Made by a program: the position numbers and the translations under genes | Notes under the pieces: model-generated | Told to the model about the DNA's origin: nothing | What the model saw: only the letters and a program-made list of their open reading frames with translations | Databases searched by the model: none | Shown here: piece by piece, positions 2 through 59,320 of the stretch | How the letters are laid out: the number at the start of each line of letters is the position of its first letter | How positions within the stretch are numbered: the first letter of the stretch is position 1 | Assembly (NCBI RefSeq): GCF_036971445.1 | Contig: NW_027211801.1 | Coordinates: 744,001-808,000, forward strand | From: Narcine bancroftii | Taxonomy: Eukaryota | DNA: 64,000 nt | Direction of reading: 5' to 3'

Positions 2-2626
2 TTTCTGGGTATGTGGGGGGGGTAAGTCCATTAAGGGACGCATGCGGTCAGGATCTGGCATGACTATCCCGTTTTCCACCACACAACCTAGAATAGCGAG
101 TCGTGTGGTCCGGAAAACACACTTGTCCAAATTGTAAGTCAGGTTTAGCTGACGGGCAGTTTGAAGAAATTTGTCTAGGTTGGCGTCATGGTCCTGCATG
201 TCGTGGCCGCAGATGGTGATATTGTCCAGATACGGGAAGGTAGCGGTTAGCCCGTTCTGGTCCACCATCCTGTCCATTTCCCGCTGGAAGACCGCGACAC
301 CATTTGTGACCCCGAATGGTACCCTGAGAAATTGATATAGCCGCCCATTCGCTTCAAAGGCCGTGAATGGTCGGTCCTCGCAGCGGATCGGGAGCTGGTG
401 GTAGGCCGAACGTAGGTCAATAGTGGAGAAAATGCGGTACTGGGCAATCTGGTTCACCACATCCGTGATGCGTGGCAGGGGGTACGCATCCAGGAGTGTG
501 AAGCGGTTAATGGTCTGGCTATAGTCGACCACCATCCGTAGTTTTTCCCCATTCTTGACAACCACCACCTGGGCTCTCCAGGGGCTTGAACTGGGTTCGA
601 TGATGCCCTCATCCAGCAATCTATGCACCTCACTCCTAATGAATTGCCTGTTTTCGTAACTATATTGCCGACTTTTGGTGGCCACAGGCTTCCAGCCAGG
701 GGTGAGGTTTGCGAAGAGTGCTGGCGGGGCAATCCGGAGTGTGGAAAGGCCGCAGGATTGGCCCCGGGGCACGGGGGCGGGTTGCTCGGGTGCTTTGGGA
801 GTGGGGCGATGGCAGACCGAGAGGGGGGCGTGGGGTCCCCCAAAGTGTAGGGACACCGTTTGGAACTGACACTGGAAGTCTAATCCCAGCAACACTGGGG
901 CGCACAATTGGGGAAGGACGAATAATTTAAAGTGGGTGACCGTCACGCCCTGTACTTCCAGCGTGGCGATGCAATACCCCTTTATCCCAGTCGATTGCGA
1001 CCTCGTCGCTAATGAGATCCTCTGGGTAGTGGGGATAATGTCAAGTCCCCAATGGAGGGCCAGATCTGGCTGGATAAAACTGTCAGTTGACCCAGAGTCA
1101 AATAAGCAATTGGTGTAGTGTCCATGCACTTTAATCAGTTCCATTGCTCTGGTGAGCGGATGAGAGCATTGCTGGTTTAATGTTATTGAAGCAGTTGACA
1201 GGCGAGTTTTGCGCAATGACGTCTCGCAACGGGATGACGTCACGCAACGGGATGACGTAGTCAACGCTCGAGGAGCAGGTTGGAGAACCTCCCGGAAGTG
1301 CTGTTGTGGCGGGTGAATGGTAAGTAGTGGGGTTTGTAGTTGCTCGCGATCGGCGGACGGGCCCTGGCGGTCGTCAGCGATGGACGCTAGGGTGAGCACC
1401 TGGTTGGCCGCGGGGGTGGCTGCGGCGGCGGTAGCGTCGGCCCCGGGGGTGTCTGTGGCGGCGGCAGCAGCGGCGGTAGCAGCGGCGGTAGCGTCGGCCC
1501 CGGTGCTGTCCGTGGCGGCGGCAGCAGCGGCTGTAGCGTCGGCCCCGGAGGTGTCCGTGGCGGCGGCAGCAGCGGCGGTAGCGTCGGCCCCGGGGGTGTC
1601 CGTGGCGGCGGCGGCAGCAGCGGCGGTAGCGTCGGCCCCGGGGGTGGCTGTGGCGGCGGCAGCAGTGGCGGTAGTGTCAAGTGTTCTGCACGGGGGCGAG
1701 AGGCAGGCCATCACCATGGTTGCGACGGTGGGTTGCACCTTCCGGGTTCGGCGTCTCCGTGACGTCAGGCGTTGCCGTGCAGGGGAGCCCTCGCTCTCAT
1801 TGGACGAGAGCTCTGGGGAAGAAGAGTTTGAATGGGATAGTGGCGGTTGAGCTTCACACGAGGCACTGTGTTTGCTGGCGGCCATTTTAGACCTACAGAC
1901 TGCAGCAAAGTGGCCGTTTTTAAGGCACTTCTGGCACCTGGCTTTTCTTGCTGGGCACTGGGATCTGCTGTGCTTGTCCCTCCCGCAGAAATAACATTTC
2001 GGGTTCGCACGGGGCAGGGTAGCAGCAGCCGACAGGCCGTCAGGGGTAGGGTAGAAGGGCACTCTACTCACATCAGAACGAGGGGTCCAGTCCCTAGAGA
2101 GCTCGGTGGACTTTAAGGCTGCATCCTCCATTGTGATTGCAATCCGGGCCACGTCCTCTAGTTTTTCTACCCCTTGTTCGAGCAAACGCAGCCTCACTTC
2201 GTTCGATCGGAGCCCGGCCACATAGGCATCCCGGACGAGGTCGCTAGTGATCTCGGCAGCAGTTTTGTCCACACAGTTACAGTCCTTGCCCAATGCCTTT
2301 AATACTTGTAAATATGCCCTGCTGGACTCGCCGGGCTGTTGCTTCCTCGACGCAAGCATGAGCCGGGCATGAACTCTGTTCACCGGTTGATCATACAGTT
2401 CCTTCAGTACCTTTATGGCTGCGGTGTAAGTGGTCTCATCCTGGATGTTCTCGTAGACTCTCAAGGACACCATAGACAGCAATGCTGTTAGACGCTGGTT
2501 ATCCTCCTCTACCTGAATGAATCTCAGGAAGTTTTCAAAGTTCAGCAGCCAGAACTTAAAGGCTTTGAAGGCTGTAGCTGACTGTGGGTCGATATCAAGT
2601 TTTTCTGGCCGAGTTAAACGCTCCAT
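2..2626 (-). CDS. Gypsy Gag-Pol polyprotein (partial; runs off the left edge)
   Basis: ATG at 2626 gives MERLTRPEKLDIDP...; two knuckles CYFCGRDKHSRSQC and CQKCLKNGHFAAVC; protease CLFDSGSTDS at ~1085-1110; RT FPYLDNITI at ~212-238 is in the same frame as the ATG. No ORF-track entry ends in this frame, consistent with an uninterrupted ORF. Confidence 0.88.
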   Translation of the reverse strand, partial: MERLTRPEKLDIDPQSATAFKAFKFWLLNFENFLRFIQVEEDNQRLTALLSMVSLRVYENIQDETTYTAAIKVLKELYDQPVNRVHARLMLASRKQQPGESSRAYLQVLKALGKDCNCVDKTAAEITSDLVRDAYVAGLRSNEVRLRLLEQGVEKLEDVARIAITMEDAALKSTELSRDWTPRSDVSRVPFYPTPDGLSAAATLPRANPKCYFCGRDKHSRSQCPARKARCQKCLKNGHFAAVCRSKMAASKHSASCEAQPPLSHSNSSSPELSSNESEGSPARQRLTSRRRRTRKVQPTVATMVMACLSPPCRTLDTTATAAAATATPGADATAAAAAAATDTPGADATAAAAAATDTSGADATAAAAAATDSTGADATAAATAAAAAATDTPGADATAAAATPAANQVLTLASIADDRQGPSADREQLQTPLLTIHPPQQHFREVLQPAPRALTTSSRCVTSSRCETSLRKTRLSTASITLNQQCSHPLTRAMELIKVHGHYTNCLFDSGSTDSFIQPDLALHWGLDIIPTTQRISLATRSQSTGIKGYCIATLEVQGVTVTHFKLFVLPQLCAPVLLGLDFQCQFQTVSLHFGGPHAPLSVCHRPTPKAPEQPAPVPRGQSCGLSTLRIAPPALFANLTPGWKPVATKSRQYSYENRQFIRSEVHRLLDEGIIEPSSSPWRAQVVVVKNGEKLRMVVDYSQTINRFTLLDAYPLPRITDVVNQIAQYRIFSTIDLRSAYHQLPIRCEDRPFTAFEANGRLYQFLRVPFGVTNGVAVFQREMDRMVDQNGLTATFPYLDNITICGHDMQDHDANLDKFLQTARQLNLTYNLDKCVFRTTRLAILGCVVENGIVMPDPDRMRPLMDLPPPHTQK
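1405..1675 (-). repeat. In-frame ~39-42 bp GC-rich tandem repeat inside gag-pol encoding (TAAAAATDTPGADA)n
   Basis: Repeated gcggtagcgtcggccccgggggtgtccgtggcggcggcagca units. Confidence 0.9.
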
Positions 2627-2660
2627 CCCTTTCAAAAAAAATTCTTTTTGCTAATAAAAT

Positions 2661-2900
2661 TGTAGAGCTCGTCGAAAGAACCAAAGACTTGTTGATCCAA
2701 ACCAAGGCTTTTATTAGCAAAAGACCGGAGCTCTTCACAGGTGGCCGACCAGTCCGGAATGATCCGACCTGGCTAGGGACACAACCCTTTAAGGCCCAAA
2801 CAATAGGTGTGGCTTAGCTCTCAGCCAATCGCTGTAAGCACAGTCTAGATACAGTAACTATATACACTATGTACATTGGTGATAGATCTGTACTATCACA
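2661..2900 (-). repeat. 5' LTR (240 bp) of the Gypsy element
   Basis: Begins TGT and ends ACA; element-sense AATAAA at ~2710-2715; TATA-like CTTAAA at ~2788-2793. Confidence 0.9.
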
Positions 2901-5387
2901 ACGACACAGTGATCATTCGGCGATGGGACGGGGAGAGGGCGAGAACATTTATATCCGGAGAGTAACCATGTGGAAGATTCTTTCCTGAGCCAAACACGTG
3001 AATGTCATTGTCACCAAAGCACATCAGCCACGTTTGAAATGATCTCGGGAAATGTTCGACTCTAAAGGGCGACGTGTGTTTCTGGGCTGCATGAAGCCCT
3101 TCCCCTGGGGCTCTGTTCCCTCTGAGCGCCACCCCTGCCCAATGTTCTCCTACCACAGCGGAGGCTAAACTCTGCACACATTGATGGAATCGACTTCATC
3201 CGGGGGCCGTCGAGGAACAGCGGCGATAACCGAGGATCCGCCCCACCCAGTCGGGCTCTGCTGCCATGAAGCGAGACGTGTCGGTGCCCAAGATTCGTTT
3301 CCCCCCTCCCCCCACTATGTTCAGCAACAGTTGCCGCCTCTCCGGCTCCAGACTCCTCACCCGCCAAACTCAATCTGAGATCAACTCTTCCTTGTCTTCG
3401 TCTTCTTGGATTTTGAATATATATAATCTCTGTTGGACAGTTTGTTGTCCATTCATTCTTTCTTTTTTCTCTTTTGTTATTGTATCCTTTGTGCAACACA
3501 GGTTTGATAGGATCGTGATCAGTAGAAACTCTGCCTGGTCCGCGGGAAAGGGAATGGAAAGGTTGTGCGCGATGCCATGGATGCAGTCTGACCATCAACC
3601 TCATCTTTCACCTTGTACGTGGATCTATTCCTTTCCTAATATCATCAATCTGGATTATCCCTGTGCTTGGGATTTGTCGTTATCGTCAAAATAATCCAGT
3701 TTGGTCAATCTCTCATCGATCTATTTATCTATCTATTCATTGATTTATATTTGTAATTATTCAGATTACAAATTTGACACAAATAACCCAATCAACCTGC
3801 AAGGGCTCGTTGAATTGAAGAGAGGGTTGAACCCGGATCCCCGTAGACGAACGGCCAGGCGGAGAGGGACAGACAGGGTGGGATGGGATCCGGCTGGGAT
3901 GAGCGGGGATCGTGTTGCGTTCACTATTCCACTCACTGGGCCACTGAACTACATTCAGAGTTCGAATGATTAACTCTGTTCGGGGCCTTAAGAGCCACAA
4001 CTGCGAACGTTTCACAAGAAAACTCTTGCCAGTCAACGGAAGTCACTGAAGTGAAGTAAAATCCAACACGGTTTGGGATTTTCCCCCTCTCTGGAGCGGA
4101 TATTGGGGAAGGTCAGCGGAACGATTGCCTGTCTTGGGGACGGTCACTGGTTCTAAGTGGAACGTGTTGGAAAGTAGAAGGAGCAGTGGACAGTCCGACT
4201 GACAAGTCTGCAGGGAACACCCGCAGGGCTCCTGCTTGCCATTGGCTCCCCTGTCCTCCCATCAGTTGAACTTCCAGGTACATTATTGAAGTAGTTAACC
4301 GGAACATTTTCTGGTATCCTTTTGGCCCTGCTACTGCAGTGTTCAGTGCCCATCCTCGTCGATGACCTGCAATCCTGGTAGTTGGAGGAGTTCCAAATGG
4401 ACCAAATGGGAAATTACATTCAGAAATTGAACATTTTAAATCCTGGAAGAATCGTAGCCTTCCGACAGCCGACCGCGGTGGGGAGACATCAGTGGGTTGG
4501 TTCTCACACAGCAGAGTCTGGGAATCCGGGATGGCTTGGCAGGGGTAGTGATGGATGCTCGAGCAACACCCGTCTTAGACAGGGACACGGATGAGAGGGG
4601 AAAATAGAGGGTTCTGAGTTTGGGAGATGGACGCCGTTCTCCACAGGTTGGAGCAGCGTCAGGGGCCGGAGTTGATCGACTGTGTTCGCTGTTCCATGCT
4701 CCGTCCGGACATCTGCCACCTTCACTTCTGCCCTCTGGGCTCCCAACCCACGTTTGTCCGCCTTCACCACAATATCACACCTCAAATGCTTGGCTCGATG
4801 AAGGGATAAAACGGTGCATCTAATTCCCCAGTTCGGCATGTTAAATGGGTGAGGGTATTTCCACTTGTTGGAAGACCTTCTTCACCAAGAGGTGACTCAT
4901 TAACGACGGGCGCTTCCGAAATGCAGAGTCCAATGCTCCTCTTTCATGTTGCGATGATCCTACTTTTGTTCTGTGTCGAGAGCAAGTCGGGTTATCAAAT
5001 CCCAGCCCTTAATTCCAGAGTGATCCGCTCAATGATTGGAGGCAGGCTCCGTTCCTGATCCCGGGCTGGACTTCTTGGTGCCTTCCGGGATGGATGATTC
5101 CATCCCTTTCCATTGAACTCAGTGGGGAAGGGTCCTCTCCGCATTTCAGCCGGATTAGTCCCGTTTCTGCCGTGGGGAGAGAGTGGAGCATGCAGGTCAA
5201 GTCATGAAACAGCCGGACACTTGACACATAGCCTGGATGTTTAACCTATCGGGGGGTTATTGGGCTGTAAATTCTGCGGCGCAGCCTCGGGGATCCAAAT
5301 CTCCTGTCTGCATTTTGAGAAACGTTCCCATTCTACACTCCCCTCCGTTTTCGGTCCAGGATTGACGATTTGTCCATTCTTTCTCAG

Positions 5388-14261: not shown

Positions 14262-17200
14262 TTTACGAGCCCAAAGGACACCAAACCCCAGCATCAACAG
14301 ACATTCACCAAGACAAGTAGTTACTTAAGTATCTTTAAACGTGAAAACAGAATCAAACTTTAACTTATCTATATTAACTGAACTAACCTTAACTCCCTTC
14401 TAATTCTAAGCACACGTGTATGTAATGTGTGTGTTGTGGCGGTGTGACCAGTGAAAGAAACACAGCCACCACGTTGAGGGTTGTTAACGACAATTTTTAT
14501 CGAAATTCAGTGTGCCCCTTTAAGGGCAGCATGAGCTCAGTCACCTGGTGAATTGTGACATCATAATCGCTGCCCAGGGCGTGCACTGGAAGGGATGCTG
14601 GAGTCAGAAAGAAACCTCTGATGATGCCATTTCCCCATGGCTGCCCTGTCACATGGTGATACAAGTGGGGCTGGTTCACCATGAGGAAGTGGACCACCAC
14701 ACAACCCCCCCTCCCACAGAACCAGCTACACATCCTGTTGCTTTGGCGGCCGGCACTGGTGGTGATGTCCAGATGGGCCGACTTCAGGCAGTCCACCATA
14801 AAAAGTTTCTCTCCCTCCAATGTCCAGGGTGAAGATTCCACCGGACCGGTGCAAGACTTTGTATGGCCCCTTGTACGGTCACTGTAGCGGTGCACCTTGT
14901 GGTCCCCTATGCATGAAAATGAATTGGGCCAAGTAAACTCTTTGGGGAGATGAAATGGCCTGGTGCCATGGCGTGCCGGGGGTGGGAGAGCTAGGAGTAG
15001 GTCCGCCAGCAAGTTTTTGTCTGTAGCCATGGTGTGAGGGTCTGGGCTAAAAAACTCACCTGGCAGGGAAAGCGGTGTGCCATAGACCATCTCTGTTGCT
15101 GAAGCATGCAGGTTCTCCTTGGGTGCCATCCTAATCATGAGGAGGACCCAGGGTAGTTTGTCTGCCCAGTCTGGTCCAGAGAGCCTGGCCATAAGCAATA
15201 CCTTCAAGTGCCTGTGGAACCTCTCCACCAACCCGTTGGACTGTGGGTGGTATGCTGTGGTGTGGTGGAGCTTGACCCCCGCCCCCCCCCAGCAGCTTTG
15301 CCATCTGAGTCCATAGGGCAGACATGAACTGTGTCTCTCTGTCATTAGTGATGTGTTCTGGAACTACAAAATGGGTGATCCATTGGCTGACCAGAGTCAT
15401 GGTACAGGTCTCTGCAGAGGCCTCCTTAATCAGTATGGCCTCTGGCCACCTTGTGCCTGATCCACCTCCGTGAGGAGGTAATGAGCCTCTTTGAACACCG
15501 GCAGTGGCCTGATGACATCAAAGTGGATCTGTTAGAATCTGCGAACTACTGGGTCGAAGTTCTGGATGGGGGCTCACGTGTGTTGCTGGACCTTGGAGGT
15601 CTGGCACCTGGTATAGTTGCTGGTCAGTTCTATAACCTCCTTCTTCAGCCCGTGCTACACAAATCACTCCGCGACCATCTACACAGTTATCTTTACCGCT
15701 GGGTGAGCGAGGTAATGGATCAGACTGAAGAGCTTCGCCCTCTAATATGGTGGGACCACCAGGCACGCTGTGCCTGTTGAGATGTCGCAAAGCAATGTGT
15801 CGAGGCTGCTGGGCACCCTGACATGCTTGAGTTTGAGGCCTCAGATGGTGGTCTGCAAGACCTGCATCTTCACATCATTCCTCTGTGCCTGAGCCAGTTG
15901 CTCATAATCCAGGCCAGGTGCGACAGTGTTGATGGCTCAATGGGAGAGCGCATCCGCCACTACATTGTCCTTTCCGGCCCTGTGTCGGATGTTGGTCGTG
16001 AACTCAGACACGTGCGAGAGGTGGTGCTGATGTCTGGTGGACCAAGGATTCTTGTTCATCACCAGTGGTTGAGTAAGGGGCTTGTGATCCATGAAGCCGT
16101 GTGCACCTCCAGCCGTGGGTACACAAGCAGTGTGGTGCTGGATAGAGCCTACTTTGTTGCAATGAAAGCCCTGTCCACCTCCTCTGACCATGATAAAGTC
16201 TTTTCTTTGGTGGCCATGAGCACAAAGAATGGGTGCATGGTGCGCGTAGCTCTGGGGATGAAACAATGGTAAAGTTCACCATTCCCATGAACTCTTGGAG
16301 GCCTTTCAGGGTGGAGGGTTTGGGGAATCATTGAATAGCTGCTACCTTTTCCAGCGCCAGTGCAGCCCTAGCTGCCGAAATGGTGTGCCCCAGGAACTGG
16401 AGGGACTCCTTGCCACACTGGCATTTGGCTGCGTTGTCCGTGAGGCCAAAGTCCGCCAGCCAGGCAAAGAGTGTGTATAGGTGGGCTTTGTCTTCGTCAT
16501 GGTTGCGACTGGCAATCAGAATATGAACACAAAGTCCAAGTCTTTTCCAACCACGTCCAATAGGCGCTGGAACATTTGGGCCACCTCCTTTAGACCAAAG
16601 GGCATATGCAGGAACTCAAAGAGGCCAAAAAGGGTGATAATGGCCATTTTACCCATGTTGTCTGGATGCACCGGGATCTGATGCTATCCCCACACGAGGT
16701 CCACATTGGAGAAGACCCGTGAGCTGTGGAGGTTGACGGAGAAGTCCTGTATGTGGGGCAATGGGTACCTGTCGGTGTTGGTTGCATCATTCAGCCGATG
16801 ATAGTCCCTGCATGGTCTTCAGCCCCCGGATGATTTCAGGACCATATGGAGTGGTGATGGCTCTGTCCGAGCACCAGACGATTCCCAGATCCTGGAGCCT
16901 GGAGAACTCCTCCTATGCCTGCTGGAGCTTCTCGGGTGGCAGCCATCTGGGTCTAGCGTGCAGTGGGGGCCCTGTGTGGCGATGTGGTCGAAAACCCCAA
17001 GCTGGGGCAGGGCAGCATTGAACCATGGCTCTAAGATGGTGAGGAATTCGTGGAAGATCTCACTGAACTCATTCCTGGCGGTGGCTATGGTGGCAATTTC
17101 AGGCCTCTGCTGTGTCTAGTCAGGTGGAGTCGAATGTTCGAACATTGACCAACATTTTACCCTTCATGTCAACCAGTAGGCCATGAACTCTGAGTCCCTA

Positions 17201-18964: not shown

Positions 18965-20775
18965 CAAATGAGACTGCTAGAAAGCCCATATGACTCACTC
19001 ACTTGCAAAAACCTCCACCTTCCTCATCAAACAACAGGAGTTATCCTTCTTGGTCAAGCTGTTGTCTTAGGTAAACAAAATCCAGGAGTGACCTTTCTGT
19101 GAGCACTTTGTAGAAAGGTCAGAAGCCTTGTAGTTATTCATAGTTATTCATCCAGCCAGGCTGTATCCAATCCAAATTCATTTAATGGCATAATTCAATT
19201 AGCACCTATTTGTGAAATGTGCACAACATTCTCCATAGTTTCTGCAATGTTACTGAAGATGAATTCTTCATTATTTCAATAAGATCTGTATTTAATGTGT
19301 GTATGTATGTAACCTACTCTAATCTTCAATATTTATCTACTCCATTACACTCCCCCTCCTTTAAAGTTATTTTAACTGTTAAAATTCAGTAATAACTAAA
19401 CTCTCTTTAAAATCACTAAAAATATAACAATTAACAATATATACATGTTATAATAAGGTAACAATGTTGAAAGCATTTTTATACATGATCAATTTTAACA
19501 TCTTGACAAACAATCTTCTGATATGAATAATTTGCAGATTATATTATTGTAATATCAAACTCCAGTTTAACAATCTTCTCTTCTTGTTCTTCATTTTATT
19601 CAAAAACACCAGAGAATTGTGGTCAGTAAATACTACAAATGGTTCCTGAGAGATACTGAGATACACATCAAAATTCTGCAGAGCAAACACAATGGACAAC
19701 AGTTCTTTTTCAATAGTGGAATAGTTCATTTGATGAACATTGAATTTCTTTGAAAAGTAGGCAACTGGATGTTCAATTTCATTATGTTTTTGCAATAAAA
19801 CTGAACCTGCTGTTCCCTCACTCATGACCACTGCTATAGAAAGAGGTTCATCAATATCAGGAGATGTAACACAGGATAATGGCATAACATATCCTATTAA
19901 TTTTCTAAATCTGTCTGACACACTTTAGTCCACACAAATTTCTCCCCTTTCATCAAAAGGTTGGCTCGTCAAAAGGAAGAGCAACCTCAGCAAAATTTCT
20001 GCAAAACTTCCTATAATATCCTGCCATTCCTAAAATCCTTCTCACTGCTTTCTTGACATTGGGAAAAGGAACCTCAGAAATTGCATTCACCTTAGCTTGA
20101 ATAGGTGCAGCTTTGCCACAGCCAACTCCATCATCCAAGTATGTTACCATGGCATTTGCAAATTAATTCTTTGCTAAATTAACAGTTAAGTTTGCTTTGG
20201 ATAATCTTGGAAACAATTTGTCCAATTCCTTCAAATGTTCTTCCCATGTGTCACTTTTTGTGACCAAATCATCAATATAAACATCTATATGTGTTAACCT
20301 TTGGATTACTGAATTAATCATCCTCTAGAATGTTGCAGAGGCATTTTTCACGCCAAAAGGTAACACATTATACTTATATAAACCAGATGGAGTAATGAAA
20401 GCTGAAAAATTCTTTCCTCTCTCAGTTAAACGCACACACCAGAAACCAACTCATGAGCTTTCAGTCCTGCTGGTCGAACAGTATCATAATTTGACACTTG
20501 CTTTGTAGTCAATCTACAGGAAGCAATTTGTGCTTTACCCTCCAATACACTTTGGATCATTAAGGACCATTTTTTTCTTTCGACCATCTTGAGCTGTCGG
20601 CGACCTTTAAAAAAGCTGAAAATAAGTATCTATATCTCCCTCATCAAAAGGAGGCACTAGATTGACCTCTCTTCTCGCCAAAAACCTCTCCCCAGGAGTT
20701 ACAGCTTCAGCTTTCTCACATTTAATCCTCTCGACTTTAACCTGTCTTTCAGCTAATTCTAACTCACATATCCTC
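14262..20775 (-). mobile_element. Gmr1-like Gypsy element copy A: 3' LTR (14262-19349, split by a nested element), PPT, RNase H/RT, internally deleted to gag
   Basis: The LTR matches the LTR at 32191; PPT aaaggagggggag at ~19350-19362; HPVAYFSKKF, YSTIEKELL and FTDHNSL lie directly before the 3' LTR with no integrase between; gag piece 20450-20775 matches 31350-31600. Confidence 0.85.
14435..18442 (-). mobile_element. Full-length degenerate Gypsy element nested in the LTR of Gmr1-like copy A
   Basis: Paired ~270 bp LTRs (14435-14703, 18177-18442), GTGT target-site duplication, tRNA-Trp-like PBS (tgtgaccccgacg), PPT, gag, protease FLVDTG, RT, RNase H (DNVVADALS), integrase TTAYHPQSNGLVERFHR. 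Confidence 0.93.
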
Positions 20776-21508
20776 TGTGACCGGGTCGCCCAACTTCCGC
20801 CCCCAGCTCCCCCAAACCTTCCACCACACAGGAGACGGAATCCCTATTCCCAGCTTCCGGTGTGTGTCCCGCTTAAATGTGACCGGGTCGCCCAACTTCC
20901 ACCCCCAGCTCCCCCAAACCTTCCACCCCGCAGGAGACAGAATCCCTATTCCTAGCTTCCGGTGTGTGTCCCGCTTAAATGTGACCGGGTCGCCCAACTT
21001 CCGCCCCCAGCACCCCCAAACCTTCCACCCCACAGGAGACAGAATCCCTATTCCCAGTTTCCGGTGTGTGTCCCGCTTAAATGTGACCAGTCGCCCAACT
21101 TCCACCCCCAGCTCCCCCAAACCTTCCACCCCACAGGAGACGGAATCCGTTTTCCCAGCTTCCGGTGTGTGTCCCGCTTAAATGTGACCGGGTCGCCCAA
21201 CTTCCACCCCCAGCTCCCCCAAAACTTCCACCCCACAGGAGACAGAATCCCTATTCCCAGTTTCCGGTGTGTGTCCCACTTAAATGTAACCAGGTCGCCC
21301 AACTTCCACCCCCAGCTCCCCCAAACCTTCCACCCCACAGGAGACAGAATCACTATTCCCAGCTTCCGGTATGTGTCCCACTTAAATGTGATCGGGTCGC
21401 CCAACTTCCATCCCCAGCTCCCCCAAACCTTCTGCCCCACAGGAGACAGAATCACTATTCCCAGCTTCCGGTGTGTGTCCCACTTAAATGTGACCGGGTC
21501 ACCCAACA
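20776..21508. repeat. 102-bp minisatellite, 7 full units plus a partial unit
   Basis: Units start at 20776, 20878, 20980, 21082, 21183, 21285, 21387 and 21489 with tgtgaccgggtcgcccaacttcc. Confidence 0.97.
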
Positions 21509-21719
21509 TCCCCCCCCCCCCCTCAGCTCGTCCTGCAGGAAACGTGATCCACCTTCCCACTCCTGGCTCGTCCTGTGGTGATTCCGGTGCAGAATTCACT
21601 GCAAAGACCGGCTGCGGATTCTGTCCGCTGGCTTTGCCTTCTCTTAAATAATTCTGGCCACAATCTTCCTCTTGCCCTTCTCTAGCTGCCTCCCCCACCC
21701 ACTTCCCTTCCCCCAGTTG

Positions 21720-24700: not shown

Positions 24701-26700
24701 ACCATGATTCAATGGTCAGCACTCTTCCACTCTGTTGAAATTAGCCAGGGTTTTCGATGTCATACCAAACCTCCGCAAACTCCTAAGGAAGTAAAGGCAC
24801 TGATGTGCTATTTTCCAGATGCCATTGGAGTTTTTGGTCCAAGAAAGATCCTCCACGTTAGTTACTCACAAGACCCTAAATGTGCTCAGCCTCTCTACCT
24901 CTGATCCCCCAATGATCACTGGATCGTACACCTCTGGTTTTCCTTTCCTGAAGTCAATAATCAGCTCCTTAGTTTTGGTGACATTGAGTGCAAGGTTGTT
25001 GTTGGTGCACCATTCATCCAAGTCCTCAATCTCCATCTAGTACGTTGACTCATCCTCTTTCTGTATACAACCCACTACCATGGTATCGTTGGCAAATTTG
25101 TTGATGGTGTTGTACCAAGCTACGCAGTCGTAGATGTAAAATGATCATGCAGAACCAGGAGCAACCACCATCCACTACACATCATCAACTCTGTAGAGGA
25201 GAGAGTGGAGAGCACCAAGTTCCTTCAAGTTTAGTTAACGAGTGACCTATCATGGACACAACATCTCCTCACTTGTCAGGAAGGCCCATCAGCAAATGCA
25301 CTTCCTGAGATGACTGAAGCGGGTAAAGCTTCCGGCCACCGTCGTCAACCTTCTTCAAGATCTATATCCAGAGCATCGTGGCTGGCTCCATCACACTTTC
25401 GTACAGTTGCTACAGAGAAATGGATCGGAAGTCAATCCACAGGATCCTGAGTGGCAGGGAGAATCACTGGAGGCTCTCTCTCCACCCCTCACCACCCATC
25501 AACGTGATCTACCATGATCGTTGTCTCAAGAAATCATGAGGACCCCTTCCTTCCTTTCATCTTTCAGCTCCTCCCATCAGGGAAGAGATACAGGAGGATT
25601 AGAGCCAGCACCACCAGGCCATTGAACAGATTCATCACCCGGGCAGAGAGAATGCTGAATGACCAAAAGATCTGCTCACACTAATCCTCTGAGACTCTCA
25701 TATTTACGAAACAATATTTGCTTACTAATTTTTTACAGGTAAAATACTTGTCTCAAACATGTATTGTTTGTCTGTGTGTTATGTCTGATTATGTGGCTGT
25801 GTGTTTTGCCTGTTTTGCAGAGGCAAACCGTTCGTCACTTTGTACTTGTATAATCAGATGACAATAAACGTTAACATCCTGGTGAATCTCCGCTGCACGC
25901 TCTCCATATCTTCCTCATCCTTCCTGTAATGAGGTGACCAGAACACAATATTGTAAATGTGGTCTCACACGAGATTTGTGGAGTACTTGCCCAAATTGTT
26001 TCTTCTATGTTAAAATGGAGTCTGCATTCACCACTTCACCCGGTAGCTCGTTTCACACTTCCACCACTCTCTGTGTGAAGAACTTCCCCCTCACATTCCC
26101 CCGGCATGGTTGGCGTAGTGGTTAGCAGAACGCCTTGAGTGCACCAGCGATCGGGACCGGACCTTGGTTCAAATCCCTTTGTGTTTGCAAGGAGTTTGTA
26201 TGTTCTCCCCGTGTCTGTGTGGGTTTTCTCCAGTTTTCATTCACCCTTCAAAATGAACTGGAAGTGTAGGTTAATGTGGTGTAAATTGGGCAACACAGAC
26301 ACGTAGAGTCGAATTGGCCTGTTACAGTGCAGTCTGTCTAAAGTTAAAATTTCAATATATTTTTCCCCTTTCATCCATAACCCATGTCCTCTGATTTGCA
26401 TCTGACTTTCCCACAGTGCAAAAAGCCTATCTCCATTTACAATGTCAAGACCCATCACAATTGTAAATGCCTTGATCAAACCTCCCTTTACTCCAGGCAA
26501 CAAATTCCAAACCTGCTTAACCCTTCTCTGCAACTCAGACCTGGCAACATCCTTGTAAATCTCCCATACACTCTATCAACCTTACTGATTTCCTTCCAGT
26601 AGTAAGTTGGGGAGCCGGTAACCAGAGAACAGGTTTCGGGCTGACAGACTGAGAGGGAATGGTTGAGTAGGCTGAGGCATATGGGGAGAAGGCCGGGTAG
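21720..26700. mobile_element. Patchwork of LINE fragments: Rex1/Babar-like (21720-21960 -, 24230-25140 -, 25145-25870 +), Penelope-like end (22165-22450 +), CR1 (22740-24220 mixed, 25870-26700 -)
   Basis: LFSLLPSGKRY (Rex1/Babar), LYKTLVRHHLEYC and VVEVWNKLPAEVV (CR1), GETETTL-type Penelope end. Confidence 0.75.
26101..26350 (+). mobile_element. tRNA-derived V-SINE (HE1-like)
   Basis: Pol III A box tggcgtagtgg, B box ggttcaaatcc, V-domain ggagtttgtatgttctccccgtgtctgtgtgggttttctcc, LINE-like tail. Confidence 0.85.
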
Positions 26701-32949: not shown

Positions 32950-34070
32950 CTTATCGTACGCCTTCTGCCCACGCTTGTTGCATCAGTCTTCACTCGGAAC
33001 GCAATCGTCTCATCTCTGGACCGCAGGATTGCTTTTGCAATCTGGTCCCTAATATCTGTGAAGGCTTTGATAGCTGCTGGGCAGAGGGGGAAAGCTGAGG
33101 CTTTTATGAGTGGGCGAACTTTGTCAGCAGAGTTGGAGACCCATTGTGCATAATATGCGAAAAGTCCTAAACATCTCTTTCAGGTTTTCTGTGTGAGTGG
33201 GACTGGGAGGTCTAGGAATGGGTACGGGCAGGCAGGGTCCGGTCCGGGCTGATATTCCCCATTCTGTTCCACATATCCAGTTACCTCGTGCTAAAGACAC
33301 ATTTGTCCCTATTATACATTAGGTTGGGTTCCTCTGCTGTCTGAAAAAAACGTTGAAGGTTAATGTCATGCTTGCGAGTGACCACATGCCAAATCATCCC
33401 TTCCCCTTGCGGACACTTGGACCTGGGGAAGCGTGTGTGCCCTCTGGGAAATTGGGGTTAGCCGGGGGTGTCTCAAGGATAGCAACACATCCAGGCAATC
33501 CTGGCAGTAGATTGTGATCGGGAAGGCAACTTATCCTACGCCTTCTGCCCGCGCTTGTCACGATCCTTGATTATAAGTCAGAAACACGGGCGGTTGCATG
33601 GCCAGTCCAAGCCCTAGTGAATTAACTAACAGGCGGGGCTCTTGGCTGCTCTTTAACTGGTTCAACATACTTCTGTCCCCCTTGTAGTTGACGGTCACTG
33701 GGCGAGTCTTTCTCTCCACCGCAATTTTGGTCCCGCAGCTCTGCATCTGGGCTCTACTGGATTGCACATGCGTGGGAGCCATCTCCGTTTCCAGGCCTTT
33801 TGATCAGGTTTTGGTGGAGTCGAGAGCGTGGGTGAGGGCAGAAGTAACTTCCATCCTGGTTATATGTTATTCTATTAAGTTGTGACTAACATCAACCCCA
33901 CGAGACAGAGTGCGTTAAACTCTAGTTTTAATAGACTAATATATACAGCTAACTCTTGCTTCTGTGCAAGCCTAGGTCAGAACGGAGGAGCCTATGACTG
34001 GTCGGCTTTATAGACGAGGTTGTCAGGTGGTGGTCCTGGTGACCTAGTCATGTAATAGCATATCAACACA
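32950..34070 (-). mobile_element. Heavily deleted Gypsy element of the same lineage as 1-2900, with 5' LTR at 33881-34070
   Basis: LKRCLGLFAYYAQWV...FRVKTDA (RT/RNase H); NLMYNRDKCVFS parallels NLTYNLDKCVFR at 115-150; 190 bp TG...CA LTR. Confidence 0.82.
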
Positions 34071-46105: not shown

Positions 46106-48156
46106 TTTTTTTTTTCTTTGGCTTGGCTTCGCGGACGAAGATTTATGGAGGGGGTAAAAAGTCCACGTCAGCTGCAGGCTCGTTTGTGGCTGACCAGTCC
46201 GATGCGGGACAGGCAGACACGATTGCAGCGGTTGCAAGGGAAAATTGGTTGGTTGGGGTTGGGTGTTGGGTTTTTCCTCCTTTGCCTTTTGTCAGTGAGG
46301 TGGGCTCTGCGGTCTTCTTCAAAGGAGGCTGCTGCCCGCCAAACTGTGAGGCGCCAAGATGCACGGTTTGAGGCGTTATCAGCCCACTGGCGGTGGTCAA
46401 TGTGGCAGGCACCAAGAGATTTCTTTAGGCAGTCCTTGTACCTTTTCTTTGGTGCACCTCTGTCACGGTGGCCAGTGGAGAGCTCGCCATATAATACGAT
46501 CTTGGGAAGGCGATGGTCCTCCATTCTGGAGACGTGACCCATCCAGCGCAGCTGGATCTTCAGCAGCGTGGACTCGATGCTGTCGACCTCTGCCATCTCG
46601 AGTACCTCGACGTTAGGGGTGTGAGCGCTCCAATGGATGTTGAGGATGGAGCGGAGACAACGCTGGTGGAAGCGTTCTAGGAGCCGTAGGTGGTGCCGGT
46701 AGAGGACCCATGATTCGGAGCCGAACAGGAGTGTGGGTATGACAACGGCTCTGTATACGCTTATCTTTGTGAGGTTTTTCAGTTGGTTGTTTTTCCAGAC
46801 TCTTTTGTGTAGTCTTCCAAAGGCGCTATTTGCCTTGGCGAGTCTGTTGTCTATCTCATTGTCGATCCTTGCATCTGATGAAATGGTGCAGCCGAGATAG
46901 GTAAACTGGTTGACCGTTTTGAGTTTTGTGTGCCCGATGGAGATGTGGGGGGGCTGGTAGTCATGGTGGGGAGCTGGCTGATGGAGGACCTCAGTTTTCT
47001 TCAGGCTGACTTCCAGGCCAAACATTTTGGCAGTTTCCGCAAAGCAGGACGTCAAGCGCTGAAGAGCTGGCTCTGAATGGGCAACTAAAGCGGCATCATC
47101 TGCAAAGAGTAGTTCACGGACAAGTTTCTCTTGTGTCTTGGTGTGAGCTTGCAGGCGCCTCAGATTGAAGAGACTGCCATCCGTGCGGTACCGGATGTAA
47201 ACAGCGTCTTCATTGTTGGGGTCTTTCATGGCTTGGTTCAGCATCATGCTGAAGAAGATTGAAAAGAGGGTTGGTGCGAGAACACAGCCTTGCTTCACGC
47301 CATTGTTAATGGAGAAGGGTTCAGAGAGCTCATTGCTGTATCTGACCCGACCTTGTTGGTTTTCGTGCAGTTGGATAATCATGTTGAGGAACTTTGGGGG
47401 ACATCCGATGCGCTCTAGTATTTGCCAAAGCCCTTTCCTGCTCACGGTGTCGAAGGCTTTGGTGAGGTCAACAAAGGTGATGTAGAGTCCTTTGTTTTGT
47501 TCTCTGCACTTTTCTTGGAGCTGTCTGAGGGCAAAGACCATGTCAGTGGTTCCTCTGTTTGCGCGAAAGCCGCACTGTGATTCTGGGAGAATATTCTCAG
47601 CGACACTAGGTATTATTCTATTTAGTAGAATCCTAGCGAAGATTTTGCCTGCAATGGAGAGCAACGTGATTCCCCTGTAGTTTGAGCAGTCTGATTTCTC
47701 GCCTTTGTTTTTGTACAGGGTGATGATGGTGGCATCACGAAGATCCTGCGGCAGTTTTCCTTGGTCCCAACAAAGCTTGAAAAACTCATGCAGTTTGGCA
47801 TGCAGAGTTTTGCCGCCAGCCTTCCAGACTTCTGGGGGGATTCCATCCATACCTGCTGCTTTGCCACTTTTCAGTTGTTCGATTGCCTTATATGTCTCAT
47901 CCAGGGTGGGAACCTCATCCAGCTCTAGCCTTAGGGGCTGTTGAGGGAGCTGGAGCAGGGCGGAATCTTGGACTGAGCGGTTGGTACTGAAAAGAGATTG
48001 GAAGTGTTCTGACCATCGGTTGAGGATGGAGATCTTGTCGCTGAGGAGGACTTTGCCGTCTGAGCTGCGCAGCGGGCTTTGGACTTGGGGTGAGGGGCCG
48101 TACACAGCCTTTAGAGCCTCGTAGAAACCCCTGAAGTCGCCAATGTCCGCGCTGAG
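46106..48156 (-). mobile_element. Young 5'-truncated RTE-clade LINE; uninterrupted 645-aa RT frame at 46168-48105
   Basis: NYRGITLLS, QCGFR, FVDLTKAFD, GVKQGCVLAPTLF, LFADD, C-terminal C2H-type finger; 3' hairpin plus (CCAAG)n/poly(A) tail; TTAGT TSD. Confidence 0.96.
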
Positions 48157-55706: not shown

Positions 55707-58700
55707 GGCAGGCAGAGGCCCCGATCCGGGCAGAGAGTTGGAGGCGGCGGCCCCAGTCCGGGCACAGGGAGAGCTGCGGCGGCCTCGGCCCCGGACCGGG
55801 CAGCATGGACCGACCTAGGAGGGGAGGCAGACCCCTCCAGCCCGGGTAAGAAACCTGCATAGGAGAAGGCCACTCCGATATAAAACCTACGACCCAAGGA
55901 CCTCGCTGCCACGTCCCAGCTTGCTTGGCCACGGCACACGAACCATGGGTGTAAAGGGTGGGGCCAGTACTGCGCGCACTGCACTCCACCTAAAAGCTCC
56001 TTTGCGCAGGCCCGAGGACAGGTCCACGTCCTCCCCCTCCACGTTCTCCCCCTTCACGTCCTCCCCCTCCACGTCCTCCCCTTCAAAAGATGCTCACAAA
56101 CTCAAGCTAGCATGCTGGAACATCAGAACCATGCTAGACAAGGCTGACAGCCACCGACCTGAACGTCGGTCTGCCCTCATTGCACATGAACTCCTCAGAC
56201 TTGACATCGACATAGCCGCACTGAGTGAAGTCCTCCTGGCAGATGTAGGCAGCCTCCAGGAACGCGGCGCGGGCTACACACTCTACTGGTCTGGCAAGCC
56301 TTCGGATGAACGACGCCTATCTGGTGTAGGCTTCATGGTCAAGAACTTCATTGCCTCCAAACTCGAAAACCTTCCGACAGGCCACTCGGACCGAATCATG
56401 TCCATGCGACTCCCCCTTCAAAACAAGCGTTGCATCACCCTCATCAGTGTCTATGCTCCAACCCTCCAGGCGGAACCAGCAGAAAAGGACAAGTCCTACA
56501 CTGACCTGCGCAACTTCATCCAATGCACCCCTTCAGCCGACAAGGTTGTCATCCTTGGCGACTTCAACGCTCGCGTCGGCAAAGACTCAGAAACCTGGCC
56601 AGGAATCCTGGGCAAGCATGGCGTCGGCAAGTGCAACGACAATGGGCGCCTCCTGTTGGAGCTCTGCGCAGAACAGCGGCTTGTCATTTCAAACACCCTT
56701 TTTCAGCAGAGGGACAGCCTTAAGACCACCTGGATGAATCCCCGATCCAAACACTGGCACCTCCTGGACTACATCCTGGTGCGAGAAAGAGACAAACGAG
56801 ATGTGCTCCACACCAGGGTCATGCCCAGCGCGGAATGCCACACTGACCACCGGCTGGTTCGCTGCAAGCTCAACCTTCACTTCAAGCCAAAGCCCAGGAA
56901 CAGTAAAGCCCCCAGAAAGAGGTTCAATGATGGAAACCTGCAGTCAGACGAAGCGAGAGGAAACTTCCAGGCAAACCTCAAAGCAAAGCTCGACGATGCA
57001 ACCCGCCTCACGGACCCGTCCCCTGAAACCCTCTGGGATCAGTTGAAGACTACCATACTGCAATCCACTGAAGAGGTTCTGGGCTTCTCCTCCAGGAAAA
57101 ACAAGGACTGGTTCGACGAAAACAGCCAGGAAATCCAGGAGCTGCTGGCAAAGAAGCGAGCTGCCCACCAGGCTCACCTTACAAAGCCGTCCTGTCCAGA
57201 GAAGAAACAAGCCTTCTGTTGCGCATGCAGCCATCTTCAGCGAAAACTCCGGGAGATCCAAAATGAGTGGTGGACTAGCCTCGCCAAACGAACCCAGCTC
57301 AGCGCGGACATTGGCGACTTCAGGGGTTTCTACGAGGCTCTAAAGGCTGTGTACGGCCCCTCACCCCAAGTCCAAAGCCCGCTGCGCAGCTCAGACGGCA
57401 AAGTCCTCCTCAGAGACAAGATCTCCATCCTCAACCGATGGTCAGAACACTTCCAATCTCTTTTCAGTGCCAACCGCTCAGTCCAAGATTCCGCCCTGCT
57501 CCAGCTCCCTCAACAGCCCCTAAGGCTAGAGCTGGATGAGGTCCTCACCCAGGATGAGACATATAAGGCAATCGAACAACTGAAAAGTGGCAAAGCAGCA
57601 GGTCTGGATGGAATCCCCCCCAGAGGCCTGGAAGGCTGGCGGCAAAACTCTGCATGTCAAACTGCATGAGTTTTTCAAGCTTTGTTGGGACCAAGGAAAA
57701 CTGCCTCAGGACCTTCGTGATGCCACCATCATCACCCTGTACAAAAACAAAGGCGAGAAATCAGACTGCTCAAACTACAGGGGAATCACGCTGCTCTCCA
57801 TTGCAGGCAAAATCTTCGCTAGGATTCTACTAAATAGAATAATACCTATTGTCGCCGAGAATATTCTCCCAGAATCACAGTGCGGCTTTCGCGCAAACAG
57901 AGGAACTACTGACATGGTCTTTGCCCTCAGACAGCTCCAAGAAAAGTGCAGAGAACAAAACAAAGGACTCTACATCACCTTTGTTGAACTGCCTTCGACA
58001 CCGTGAGCAGGAAAGGGCTTTGGCAAATACTAGAGTGCATCGGATGTCCCCCAAAGTTCCTCAACATGATTATCCAACTGCACGAAAACCAACAAGGTCG
58101 GGTCAGATACAGCAATGAGCTCTCTGAACCCTTCTCCATTAACAATGGCGTGAAGCAAGGCTGTGTTCTCGCACCAACCCTCTTTTCAATCTTCTTCAGC
58201 ATGATGCTGAACCAAGCCATGAAAGACCTCAACAGTGAAGACGCTGTTTACATCCGGTACCGCACGGATGGCAGTCTCTTCAATCTGAGGCGCCTGCAAG
58301 CTCACACCAAGACACAAGAGAAACTTGTCCGTGAACTACTCTTTGCAGACGATGCCGCTTTAGATCCAGCTCTTCAGCGCTTGACGTCCTGCTTTGCGGA
58401 AACTGCCAAAATGTTTGGCCTGGAAGTCAGCCTGAAGAAAACTGAGGTCCTCCATCAGCCAGCTCCCCACCATGACTACCAGCCCCCCCACATCTCCATC
58501 GGGCACACAAAACTCAAAACGGTCAACCAGTTTACCTATCTCGGCATCACCATTTCATCAGATGCAAGGATCGACAATGAGATAGACAACAGACTCGCCA
58601 AGGCAAATAGCGCCTTTGGAAGACTACACAAAAGAGTCTGGAAAAACAATCAACTGAAAAACCTCACAAAGATAAGCGTATACAGAGCCGTTGTCATACC

Positions 58701-59320
58701 CACACTCCTGTTCGGCTCCGAATCATGGGTCCTCTACCGGCATCACCTACGGCTCCTAGAACGCTTCCACCAGCGTTGTTTCCGCTCCATCCTCAACATC
58801 CATTGGAGCGCTTTCATCCCTAACGTCGAAGTACTCGAGACGGCAGAGGTCGACAGCATCGAGTCCACGCTGCTGAAGATCCAGCTGCGCTGGGTGGGTC
58901 ACGTCTCCAAAATGGAGGACCATCGCCTTCCCAAGATCGTGTTATATGGCAAGCTCTCCACTGGCCACCGTGACAGAGGTGCACCAAAGAAAAGGTACAA
59001 GGACTGCCTAAAGAAATCTCTTGGTGCCTGCCACATTGACCACCGCCAGTGGGCTGATATCGCCTCAAACCGTGCATGTTGGCGCCTCACAGTTTGGCGG
59101 GCAGCAACCTCCTTTGAAGAAGACCGCAGAGCCCACCTCACTGACAAAAGGCAAAGGAGGAAAAACCCAACACCCAACCCCAACCAACCAATTTTCCCCT
59201 GCAGCCGCTGCAACCGTGTATGCCTGTCCCGCATCGGACTTGTCAGCCACAAACGAGCCTGCAGCTGACGTGGACTTTTACCCCCTCCATAAATCTTCGT
59301 CCGCGAAACCAAGCCAAAGA
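55707..59320 (+). mobile_element. Near-full-length RTE-clade LINE (APE + RT), two frameshifts
   Basis: WNIRT, SVYAPT, GDFNA, TDHRLV (endonuclease) and LFADD (RT). Relative to the 46-48 kb copy: +1 C at ~57620, a 7-bp deletion at ~57990 and a 12-bp deletion at ~58362. Confidence 0.96.

Follow-up and report, generated by a model that had tools for sequence, protein, structure and literature searches.

A Ty3/Gypsy retrotransposon in a 64,000-nucleotide stretch of Narcine bancroftii DNA (the window) carries, one base past its 5′ LTR, a perfect 14-base complement of a segment inside that same LTR, and the element most probably primes reverse transcription with its own RNA through this complement, in the manner of Tf1. 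Self-priming is the best explanation of several observations taken together, i.e., the complementarity itself, its position at the mapped LTR end, the lack of a tRNA-type primer site, and the covariation of the two pairing arms both within the family and between families. The features of the element and of the duplex are as follows.

2–2626, minus strand: gag–protease–reverse transcriptase open frame of 875 codons, starting at ATG 2626 and exiting at the window start (translation; Pfam protease and RVT_1)
2661–2900, minus strand: 5′ LTR of 240 bp, TGTGATAG...GCTCTACA, with TGTG...TACA ends (depth step, loose contig ends, LTR–LTR joint)
2660, minus strand: single-A spacer between the terminal CA of the LTR and the primer-binding site (sequence and mapped LTR end)
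2709–2722, minus strand: arm 1, the putative self-primer in the LTR, TTTTGCTAATAAAA, exact complement of 2659–2646, with a putative cut after A2709
2646–2659, minus strand: arm 2, the putative primer-binding site, TTTTATTAGCAAAA, complementary to the element's own LTR
2643–2644, minus strand: two extra predicted pairs with 2723–2724, beyond a one-base bulge at A2645 (fold)

The element is an LTR retrotransposon that spans the minus strand from about 2900 to the start of the window, so that its 3′ end lies outside. Its single gag-pol frame encodes two CCHC-like knuckles, an aspartic protease and an RVT_1 domain. The full-length family protein, P0001 (1457 aa, 97–98% identical to the window ORF over their common parts), adds RNase H and an integrase core. 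Pfam places the protease at 525–610, RVT_1 at 719–877, RNase H at 939–1064 and rve at 1155–1251, giving the order PR–RT–RH–IN, and the top matches among solved structures are Ty3 Gag-Pol (7q5b, E 6e-63) and Ty3 RT (4ol8, E 5e-53). The domain order, the Ty3-type RT/RNase H and the TG...CA ends of the LTR identify the element as a member of Ty3/Gypsy (Metaviridae), and it is a recently active one. An annotated protein fragment of Narcine bancroftii is 95% identical to it.

At the RT active site (221–232, minus strand), the window copy and P0001 share the motif YLDN, where P0003 (51% identical) has YLDD; despite YLDN, the family is abundant and young, with 2346 of 8305 contigs at least 99% alike. 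Between gag and protease lies an Ala/Thr/Asp-rich tandem repeat (1365–1735, minus strand) built of 45-nt units with sub-repeats, the copy number of which varies among the window copy, P0001 and P0002, and which P0003 lacks. Just upstream of the LTR, 2901–3027 is 70% similar to 24800–24927, suggesting that the element sits in or beside another repeat. No second LTR copy of the family was found within the 64-kb window.

The borders of the LTR were mapped by aligning public contigs from four runs to 2400–3100, all runs being used as assembled contigs. From 2660 to 2664, summed contig depth increases about ten-fold, and past 2900 it is back at background. In run X1, about 600 contigs (88, 120 and 393) enter unrelated sequence just before 2659–2661, and 62 contigs do so just after 2900. 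Three contigs, at roughly single-copy depth, contain an LTR–LTR junction in which 2900 is joined to 2661. Together, the depth step, the diverging contigs and the joint define the LTR as 2900–2661 with TG...CA ends; all three meet at 2661, and the LTR end proposed in a preliminary description of this DNA is thus correct. Depth over the LTR exceeds that of the internal region about 10–15-fold in X1, a DNA run, and as much as about 100-fold in X5, an excess which points to many solo LTRs or LTR-only derivatives. Runs X5 and X8, guessed to be RNA, resemble low-coverage DNA with many unrelated LTR flanks, and their contigs yielded no transcript ends.

Read in the sense of the element, arm 1 (2722–2709) and arm 2 (2659–2646) are reverse complements at 14 of 14 positions, and only A2660 separates the complement from the mapped LTR end. 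Where an LTR ends is determined by the site at which the minus-strand primer binds; a complement that starts a single base past the terminal CA is, by definition, at that site. Ahead of the gag ATG at 2626, the leader measures 34 bases, and inspection of its sequence revealed no TGG-type tRNA primer site. Both the missing tRNA-type site and the 14-nt complementarity to an LTR segment that includes AATAAA had been noted in the preliminary description, and both are real. When the leader was kept real and the LTR was shuffled 20,000 times with its dinucleotides preserved, none of the shuffles produced more than 11 complementary bases at the primer-binding position. When both sequences were shuffled 5,000 times, no complement longer than 12 arose anywhere in the leader. 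What counts against self-priming is the only moderate stability of the AU-rich duplex (−14.8 kcal/mol), which 27 of 1000 shuffled leaders equalled by energy.

A second, pseudoknot-like helix, which the preliminary description had placed between 2739–2728 and the terminal bases of the LTR (2670–2661), is unsupported. All that it comprises is the palindrome GAGCTC, extended by one pair and, past a mismatch, by two others; shuffled sequences often yield a helix of this length. It is absent from the minimum-energy predicted folds and has no counterpart in the full-length relative L001 (see below), and a change at 2669, carried by 14% of the family LTR depth, is uncompensated.

Variation within the family bears directly on the 14-bp duplex. 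Among more than 100 family contigs, arm 1 shows no variant at 5% or above, except in a co-varying subfamily that diverges after 2716. In the leader, the variants 2649 T>A and 2651 C>T (plus strand) occur in 44–48 X1 contigs, about 5% of the internal depth, and together turn the leader into TTTTATTAACTAAAAGA. In the LTR, 43 X1 contigs track the family to 2716 and then continue as ACTAAAAGAC..., the plus strand of that LTR being TTTTATTAACTAAAAGAC. The leader and the LTR of the subfamily hold the same 17 letters on opposite strands and thus form a perfect, continuous 17-bp duplex, which includes bases 2643–2644 without interruption. Compared with the window copy, the subfamily duplex shows a C–G to U–A exchange and a length change of one base. 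One X5 contig with the 2651 change stops matching exactly at 2716, which phases the two variants.

Relatives with the same layout were found in a metagenome scan by protein alignment, which gave five loci that include the gag start and upstream DNA; the LTR ends of these relatives are placed by analogy with the window element. L001 encodes a full-length polyprotein that is 57% identical to the window element. The two LTR copies begin at 803 (5′) and, preceded by a polypurine tract, at 4717 (3′). In L001, bases 908–920 (TGAGTCGTTTAAA), inside the LTR, are the exact complement of 963–975 (TTTAAACGACTCA), giving 13 bp, and arm 2 comes after ...GTCAACA and one A. The L001 family also includes L004 and L005, diverged copies with one C·A mismatch. 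L006 and L007, the gag of which is 33–36% identical, carry the arms GAATAAGTTTAATAAA and TTTATTAAACTTATTC; pairing is 16 of 16 in L007, and L006 differs from it by an A–U to G–C exchange and has one C·A mismatch. The succession of CA, one A and the complement is common to the window element, L001, L005, L006 and L007, and a TGG site is absent from the leaders of the last four.

Across the three families, the leaders are 20–36 nt long, with 21–49 bases between the arms and 8–21 bases to the gag ATG. The letters of the arms are unrelated between the three families, save for a common ...UAAA at the 3′ end of arm 1, and the perfect duplexes, about 60 bp in all, contain no G–U pair. Related copies thus keep the complementarity through changes in both arms (17 bp in the subfamily, 13 bp in L001, 16 bp in L007). 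The self-priming reading of the preliminary description is well supported by this within-family compensation, by the position of the complement, and by the different yet perfect arms of two related families.

A further inverted repeat lies in the window itself.

33945–33928 with 33878–33861, minus strand: inverted repeat of a decayed relative, 16 of 18 pairs, 49-nt spacing as between arms 1 and 2

ATTAAA stands at the 3′ end of its first arm, and the repeat is located about 480 nt upstream of a pol fragment (33376–32976, minus strand) that is 52% identical to P0001. This decayed copy at 33861–33945 is a possible fourth case of the pairing. A plus-strand reading of 33855–34070 as a second relative was rejected, as it gave no significant duplex and an LTR similarity at noise level.

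On the Tf1 model, arm 1 (2722–2709) would fold back on arm 2 (2659–2646), the 14 bases that follow the 5′ LTR. A cut after A2709, made by the element's RNase H if the reaction proceeds as in Tf1, would leave a paired 3′-OH one base from the LTR end. Extension from this 3′-OH would copy A2660 and then 2661–2708 to give a 49-nt minus-strand strong-stop DNA, which would be transferred to the RNA's short 3′ R, between arm 1 and the poly(A) site predicted near 2690–2694. Plus-strand DNA would copy the RNA primer, so the primer-binding site would be rewritten from arm 1 in each cycle. Such rewriting would keep drifting arms perfect and free of G–U pairs, though wholly different between families, and the absence of G–U pairs is more readily explained by copying from a primer than by selection acting only on a hairpin. 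The model would leave an R of about 15 nt for strand transfer and a U5 of about 30 nt; an R of only about 15 nt would count against self-priming.

Arm 1 overlaps a polyadenylation signal, and the following features bear on other readings of the duplex.

2710–2715, minus strand: AATAAA poly(A) hexamer within arm 1
2673–2694, minus strand: predicted cleavage site and GU/U-rich downstream element, the putative R/U5 border

CA dinucleotides at 2694–2693 and 2691–2690 lie 16–20 nt downstream of the hexamer, and a GU/U-rich run occupies 2688–2673; with the AAUAAA, they predict a poly(A) site near 2692. HIV-1 can sequester the AAUAAA of its 5′ R in a poly(A) hairpin and uses the 3′ copy. The duplex might by the same token serve only to mask the poly(A) signal, or act as another kind of regulatory hairpin, with priming done by something else. 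The duplexes of the window element, L007 and the decayed copy do contain the hexamer, as AAUAAA or AUUAAA at the 3′ end of arm 1, and the partner arm occurs only downstream of the 5′ LTR, so that the 3′ copy stays free. However, in the L001/L004/L005 family the hexamer, ATTAAA, is located 5 nt outside the duplex (in the L001 family, in the loop of a small predicted hairpin), the leaders of 20–36 nt hold no other primer site, and a mask gives no reason for the complement to begin one base past the mapped LTR end. Moreover, Watson–Crick arms without G–U pairs suggest copying over selection for stability. A duplex that acts only as a mask or regulatory hairpin is, in our estimate, improbable.

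Masking and self-priming may nonetheless coexist. The duplex plausibly buries the AAUAAA of the 5′ LTR and leaves the signal of the 3′ LTR, which has no partner there, free. In contrast to the HIV-1 poly(A) hairpin, the partner strand here is the putative primer-binding site and lies outside the LTR. Also in contrast to HIV-1, pairing of the hexamer is not conserved in the L001 family, and any effect on polyadenylation is putative. In a sequence alignment the hexamer regions are homologous, with the arm of L001 further upstream. Masking might be a side benefit of the tightly packed R; it is not what the families have conserved.

A leader structure for packaging, dimerisation or translational control, unrelated to priming, is improbable as well. 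Long-range pairings between U5 and the leader are common in retroviral leaders, and in the predicted folds the long-range helix closes a loop in each RNA, with the RNAs folding better than their shuffled versions (z −2.0 to −5.8). What such a structure fails to account for is the exact register with the LTR end, the absence of an alternative primer-binding site, and arms that are wholly changed between families yet perfect. Small hairpins are predicted within the loop in each family and are not alignable between families, a U5-IR-like stem-loop next to the primer-binding duplex having been looked for; here, MAFFT aligned the loop region by sequence and not by helix register, and the pairs were tabulated by script.

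Binding of arm 2 to a host tRNA or tRNA fragment, with the match to the LTR being secondary, is very improbable. Most LTR elements are tRNA-primed, some of them via internal tRNA halves (PMC6317226), whereas here the site has no TGG start, and tRNA priming would call for three tRNA pieces unrelated to one another, each matching its element's own LTR. The AT-rich 14-mer also appears unlike a cytoplasmic tRNA arm. A search for tRNA genes within the 64-kb window found none. Finally, although both arms start with T4 and end with A4, making 8 of 14 positions low-complexity, a chance inverted repeat in AT-rich sequence is excluded by the LTR shuffles, by the recurrence of the geometry in independent families and by the covariation within the family.

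Self-priming as in Tf1 raises the question of where the transcript starts, on which one more feature bears.

2858–2879, minus strand: candidate promoter in U3, with CCAAT at 2879–2875 and TATATAG at 2864–2858 (predicted from sequence)

If this TATA/CCAAT pair is used, the start would fall near 2832, and arm 1 would lie about 110 nt inside the transcript as an internal primer, which is what the preliminary description had claimed on the strength of a weak TATA-like motif some 65 nt upstream. The window LTR has no TATA 30 nt ahead of arm 1, and its only clear TATA/CCAAT lies about 140 nt upstream. In L001 and L005, a conserved TTTATTTA is found 26–33 nt upstream of arm 1; its position about 30 bases before the arm of the L001 family favours a 5′-terminal primer as in Tf1. 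On balance, we lean somewhat towards a Tf1-like transcript whose first base lies near 2724, coinciding with the start of arm 1 or immediately preceding it. With a 5′-terminal primer, run-off at the 5′ end of the RNA would provide a natural stop for plus-strand strong-stop DNA, and the sharp 5′ border of the complementarity also speaks for this arrangement; an internal primer would offer no obvious stop for plus-strand strong-stop synthesis. A TATA-less start from a TCT-type initiator at 2724–2718 and a DPE-like motif is speculation.

The other arrangement, in which an internal stretch of R is the primer and a single duplex both masks the poly(A) signal of the 5′ LTR and primes after an internal cut, in a pan-metazoan, non-chromoviral (possibly Mag-type) Gypsy lineage assumed to be tRNA-primed, is conceivable but rather doubtful. 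If true, internal priming would add to the known form of self-priming another one, organised independently, in which poly(A) bypass is coupled to priming.

In Tf1, the first 11 nt of the transcript pair with the primer-binding site, and RNase H cuts between nucleotides 11 and 12 (PMC7175516). Self-priming has been predicted from similar complementarity in Tj1, Tf1/sushi, Tcn1 and TAR elements (PMC4600332, PMC6317226), and it has been reported for the Tf1/sushi, Tcn1 and copia TAR lineages (PMC6317226, PMC6934838). Complementarity between the LTR and the leader underlies such predictions for vertebrate, fungal and plant elements (PMC6317226; Butler et al. 2001, as cited in PMC4600332). Like Tf1 and Tf2 of Schizosaccharomyces pombe and Tj1 of S. 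japonicus, the present element has no tRNA primer-binding site, and the bases after its LTR complement its own LTR (PMC7175516, PMC4600332). As in Tf1 and Tj1, U5 falls within the loop closed by the fold-back duplex, and cleavage at the duplex end would yield the primer.

We also note differences between the present elements and these known systems. First, the duplex is 13–17 bp long here, whereas it is 11 bp in Tf1. Second, unlike in Tf1 and Tj1, the poly(A) hexamer lies in or right beside the primer stretch, which would leave a very short R. Third, arm 1 is here only a candidate for the 5′ end of the transcript, unlike in Tf1. Fourth, the present element differs from Tf1 and Tj1 in its gag, in having gag and pol in one frame, and in the absence of a chromodomain. 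The same holds in part for sushi-ichi and its relatives and for Tcn1, all Gypsy chromoviruses, from which the element is set apart by the lack of a chromodomain, Retrotrans_gag and a Tf2-type SH3.

These assignments come from profile searches. At E ≤ 0.01, no chromodomain was matched in P0001 or P0003, and none of Retrotrans_gag, Integrase_H2C2 and SH3_Tf2-1 in P0001; P0003 gave a sub-threshold H2C2 match and was without Retrotrans_gag and the Tf2-type SH3. At E ≤ 10, gag matched only zinc knuckles, a sub-threshold PNMA and a weaker, also sub-threshold, DUF87. Pol is 27% identical to the chromovirus-type protein P0005, a protein atlas returned generic RT clusters only, and NCBIfam returned transposase-like integrase matches only. 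With no chromodomain, Retrotrans_gag or Tf2-type SH3, the element is indeed not obviously a chromovirus, as had been stated in the preliminary description.

A likeness to Mag C/SURL-type elements is seen in LTRs of about 160–240 bp, a single gag-pol frame, a clear AATAAA and the lack of a conserved TATA. The published LTR-end motifs of Mag C are TGTNATRT...AYANAACA (PMC3601003, table 3), to which the ends of the window LTR, TGTGATAG...TCTACA, and of L001, ...GTCAACA, may be compared. A Mag C-type assignment, based on LTR length and end motifs, is offered as a lead. In the searchable literature, we found no statement on the priming of Mag, SURL or Jule elements, and nothing on self-priming in the present lineage.

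The pol relatives of the element are widespread. Those in Hypanus, Scyliorhinus and Mobula are 73–77% identical, and those in Trichuris, in the anemone Actinostola and in hundreds of environmental contigs of about 4 kb are about 58–65% identical; the viral contigs scanned contained no relative. Textbooks describe self-priming for Tf1, and there are predictions of it for Tf1/sushi chromoviruses as well as for two plant lineages. If the present reading is true, self-priming would also be the rule in a separate and very widespread animal Gypsy lineage, with members in sharks, rays, whipworms, a sea anemone and many environmental contigs, and would provide a metazoan case for an old and recurrent hairpin priming among LTR elements. 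Annotation pipelines that seek tRNA sites would then fail on these elements or mislabel them, and host defences based on tRNA fragments would be blind to them. The tight packing of the primer, the poly(A) hexamer and a very short R would also make for a compact design.

Several observations concern the surroundings of the element and the public data. Two close relatives, P0032 and P0077, are deposited as "DDE-type integrase/transposase" of bacterial metagenome bins (Rhizobiales bacterium; bacterium), and are probably mis-binned eukaryotic DNA. Runs X9–X11, labelled as three other organisms (B, C and D), contain 29–63% of the 31-mers from 2403–2786. From organism B, a 697-nt contig matches 2403–2697 with one mismatch and is unrelated from 2697/2698, near the predicted R/U5 border; it could be a recombinant LTR, or could reflect close relatedness or transfer between hosts. 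Elsewhere in the window, 16519–16845 and 19523–20435 (minus strand) are two Gypsy-like pol fragments of other lineages, 28–34% identical to P0001. A tandem array of at least nine copies of units of about 102 bp, 70–93% alike, occupies 20674–21584, and 46151–48156 and 57298–59285 form an inverted duplication of about 2 kb, the arms of which are 97–99% complementary and lie about 9–11 kb apart.
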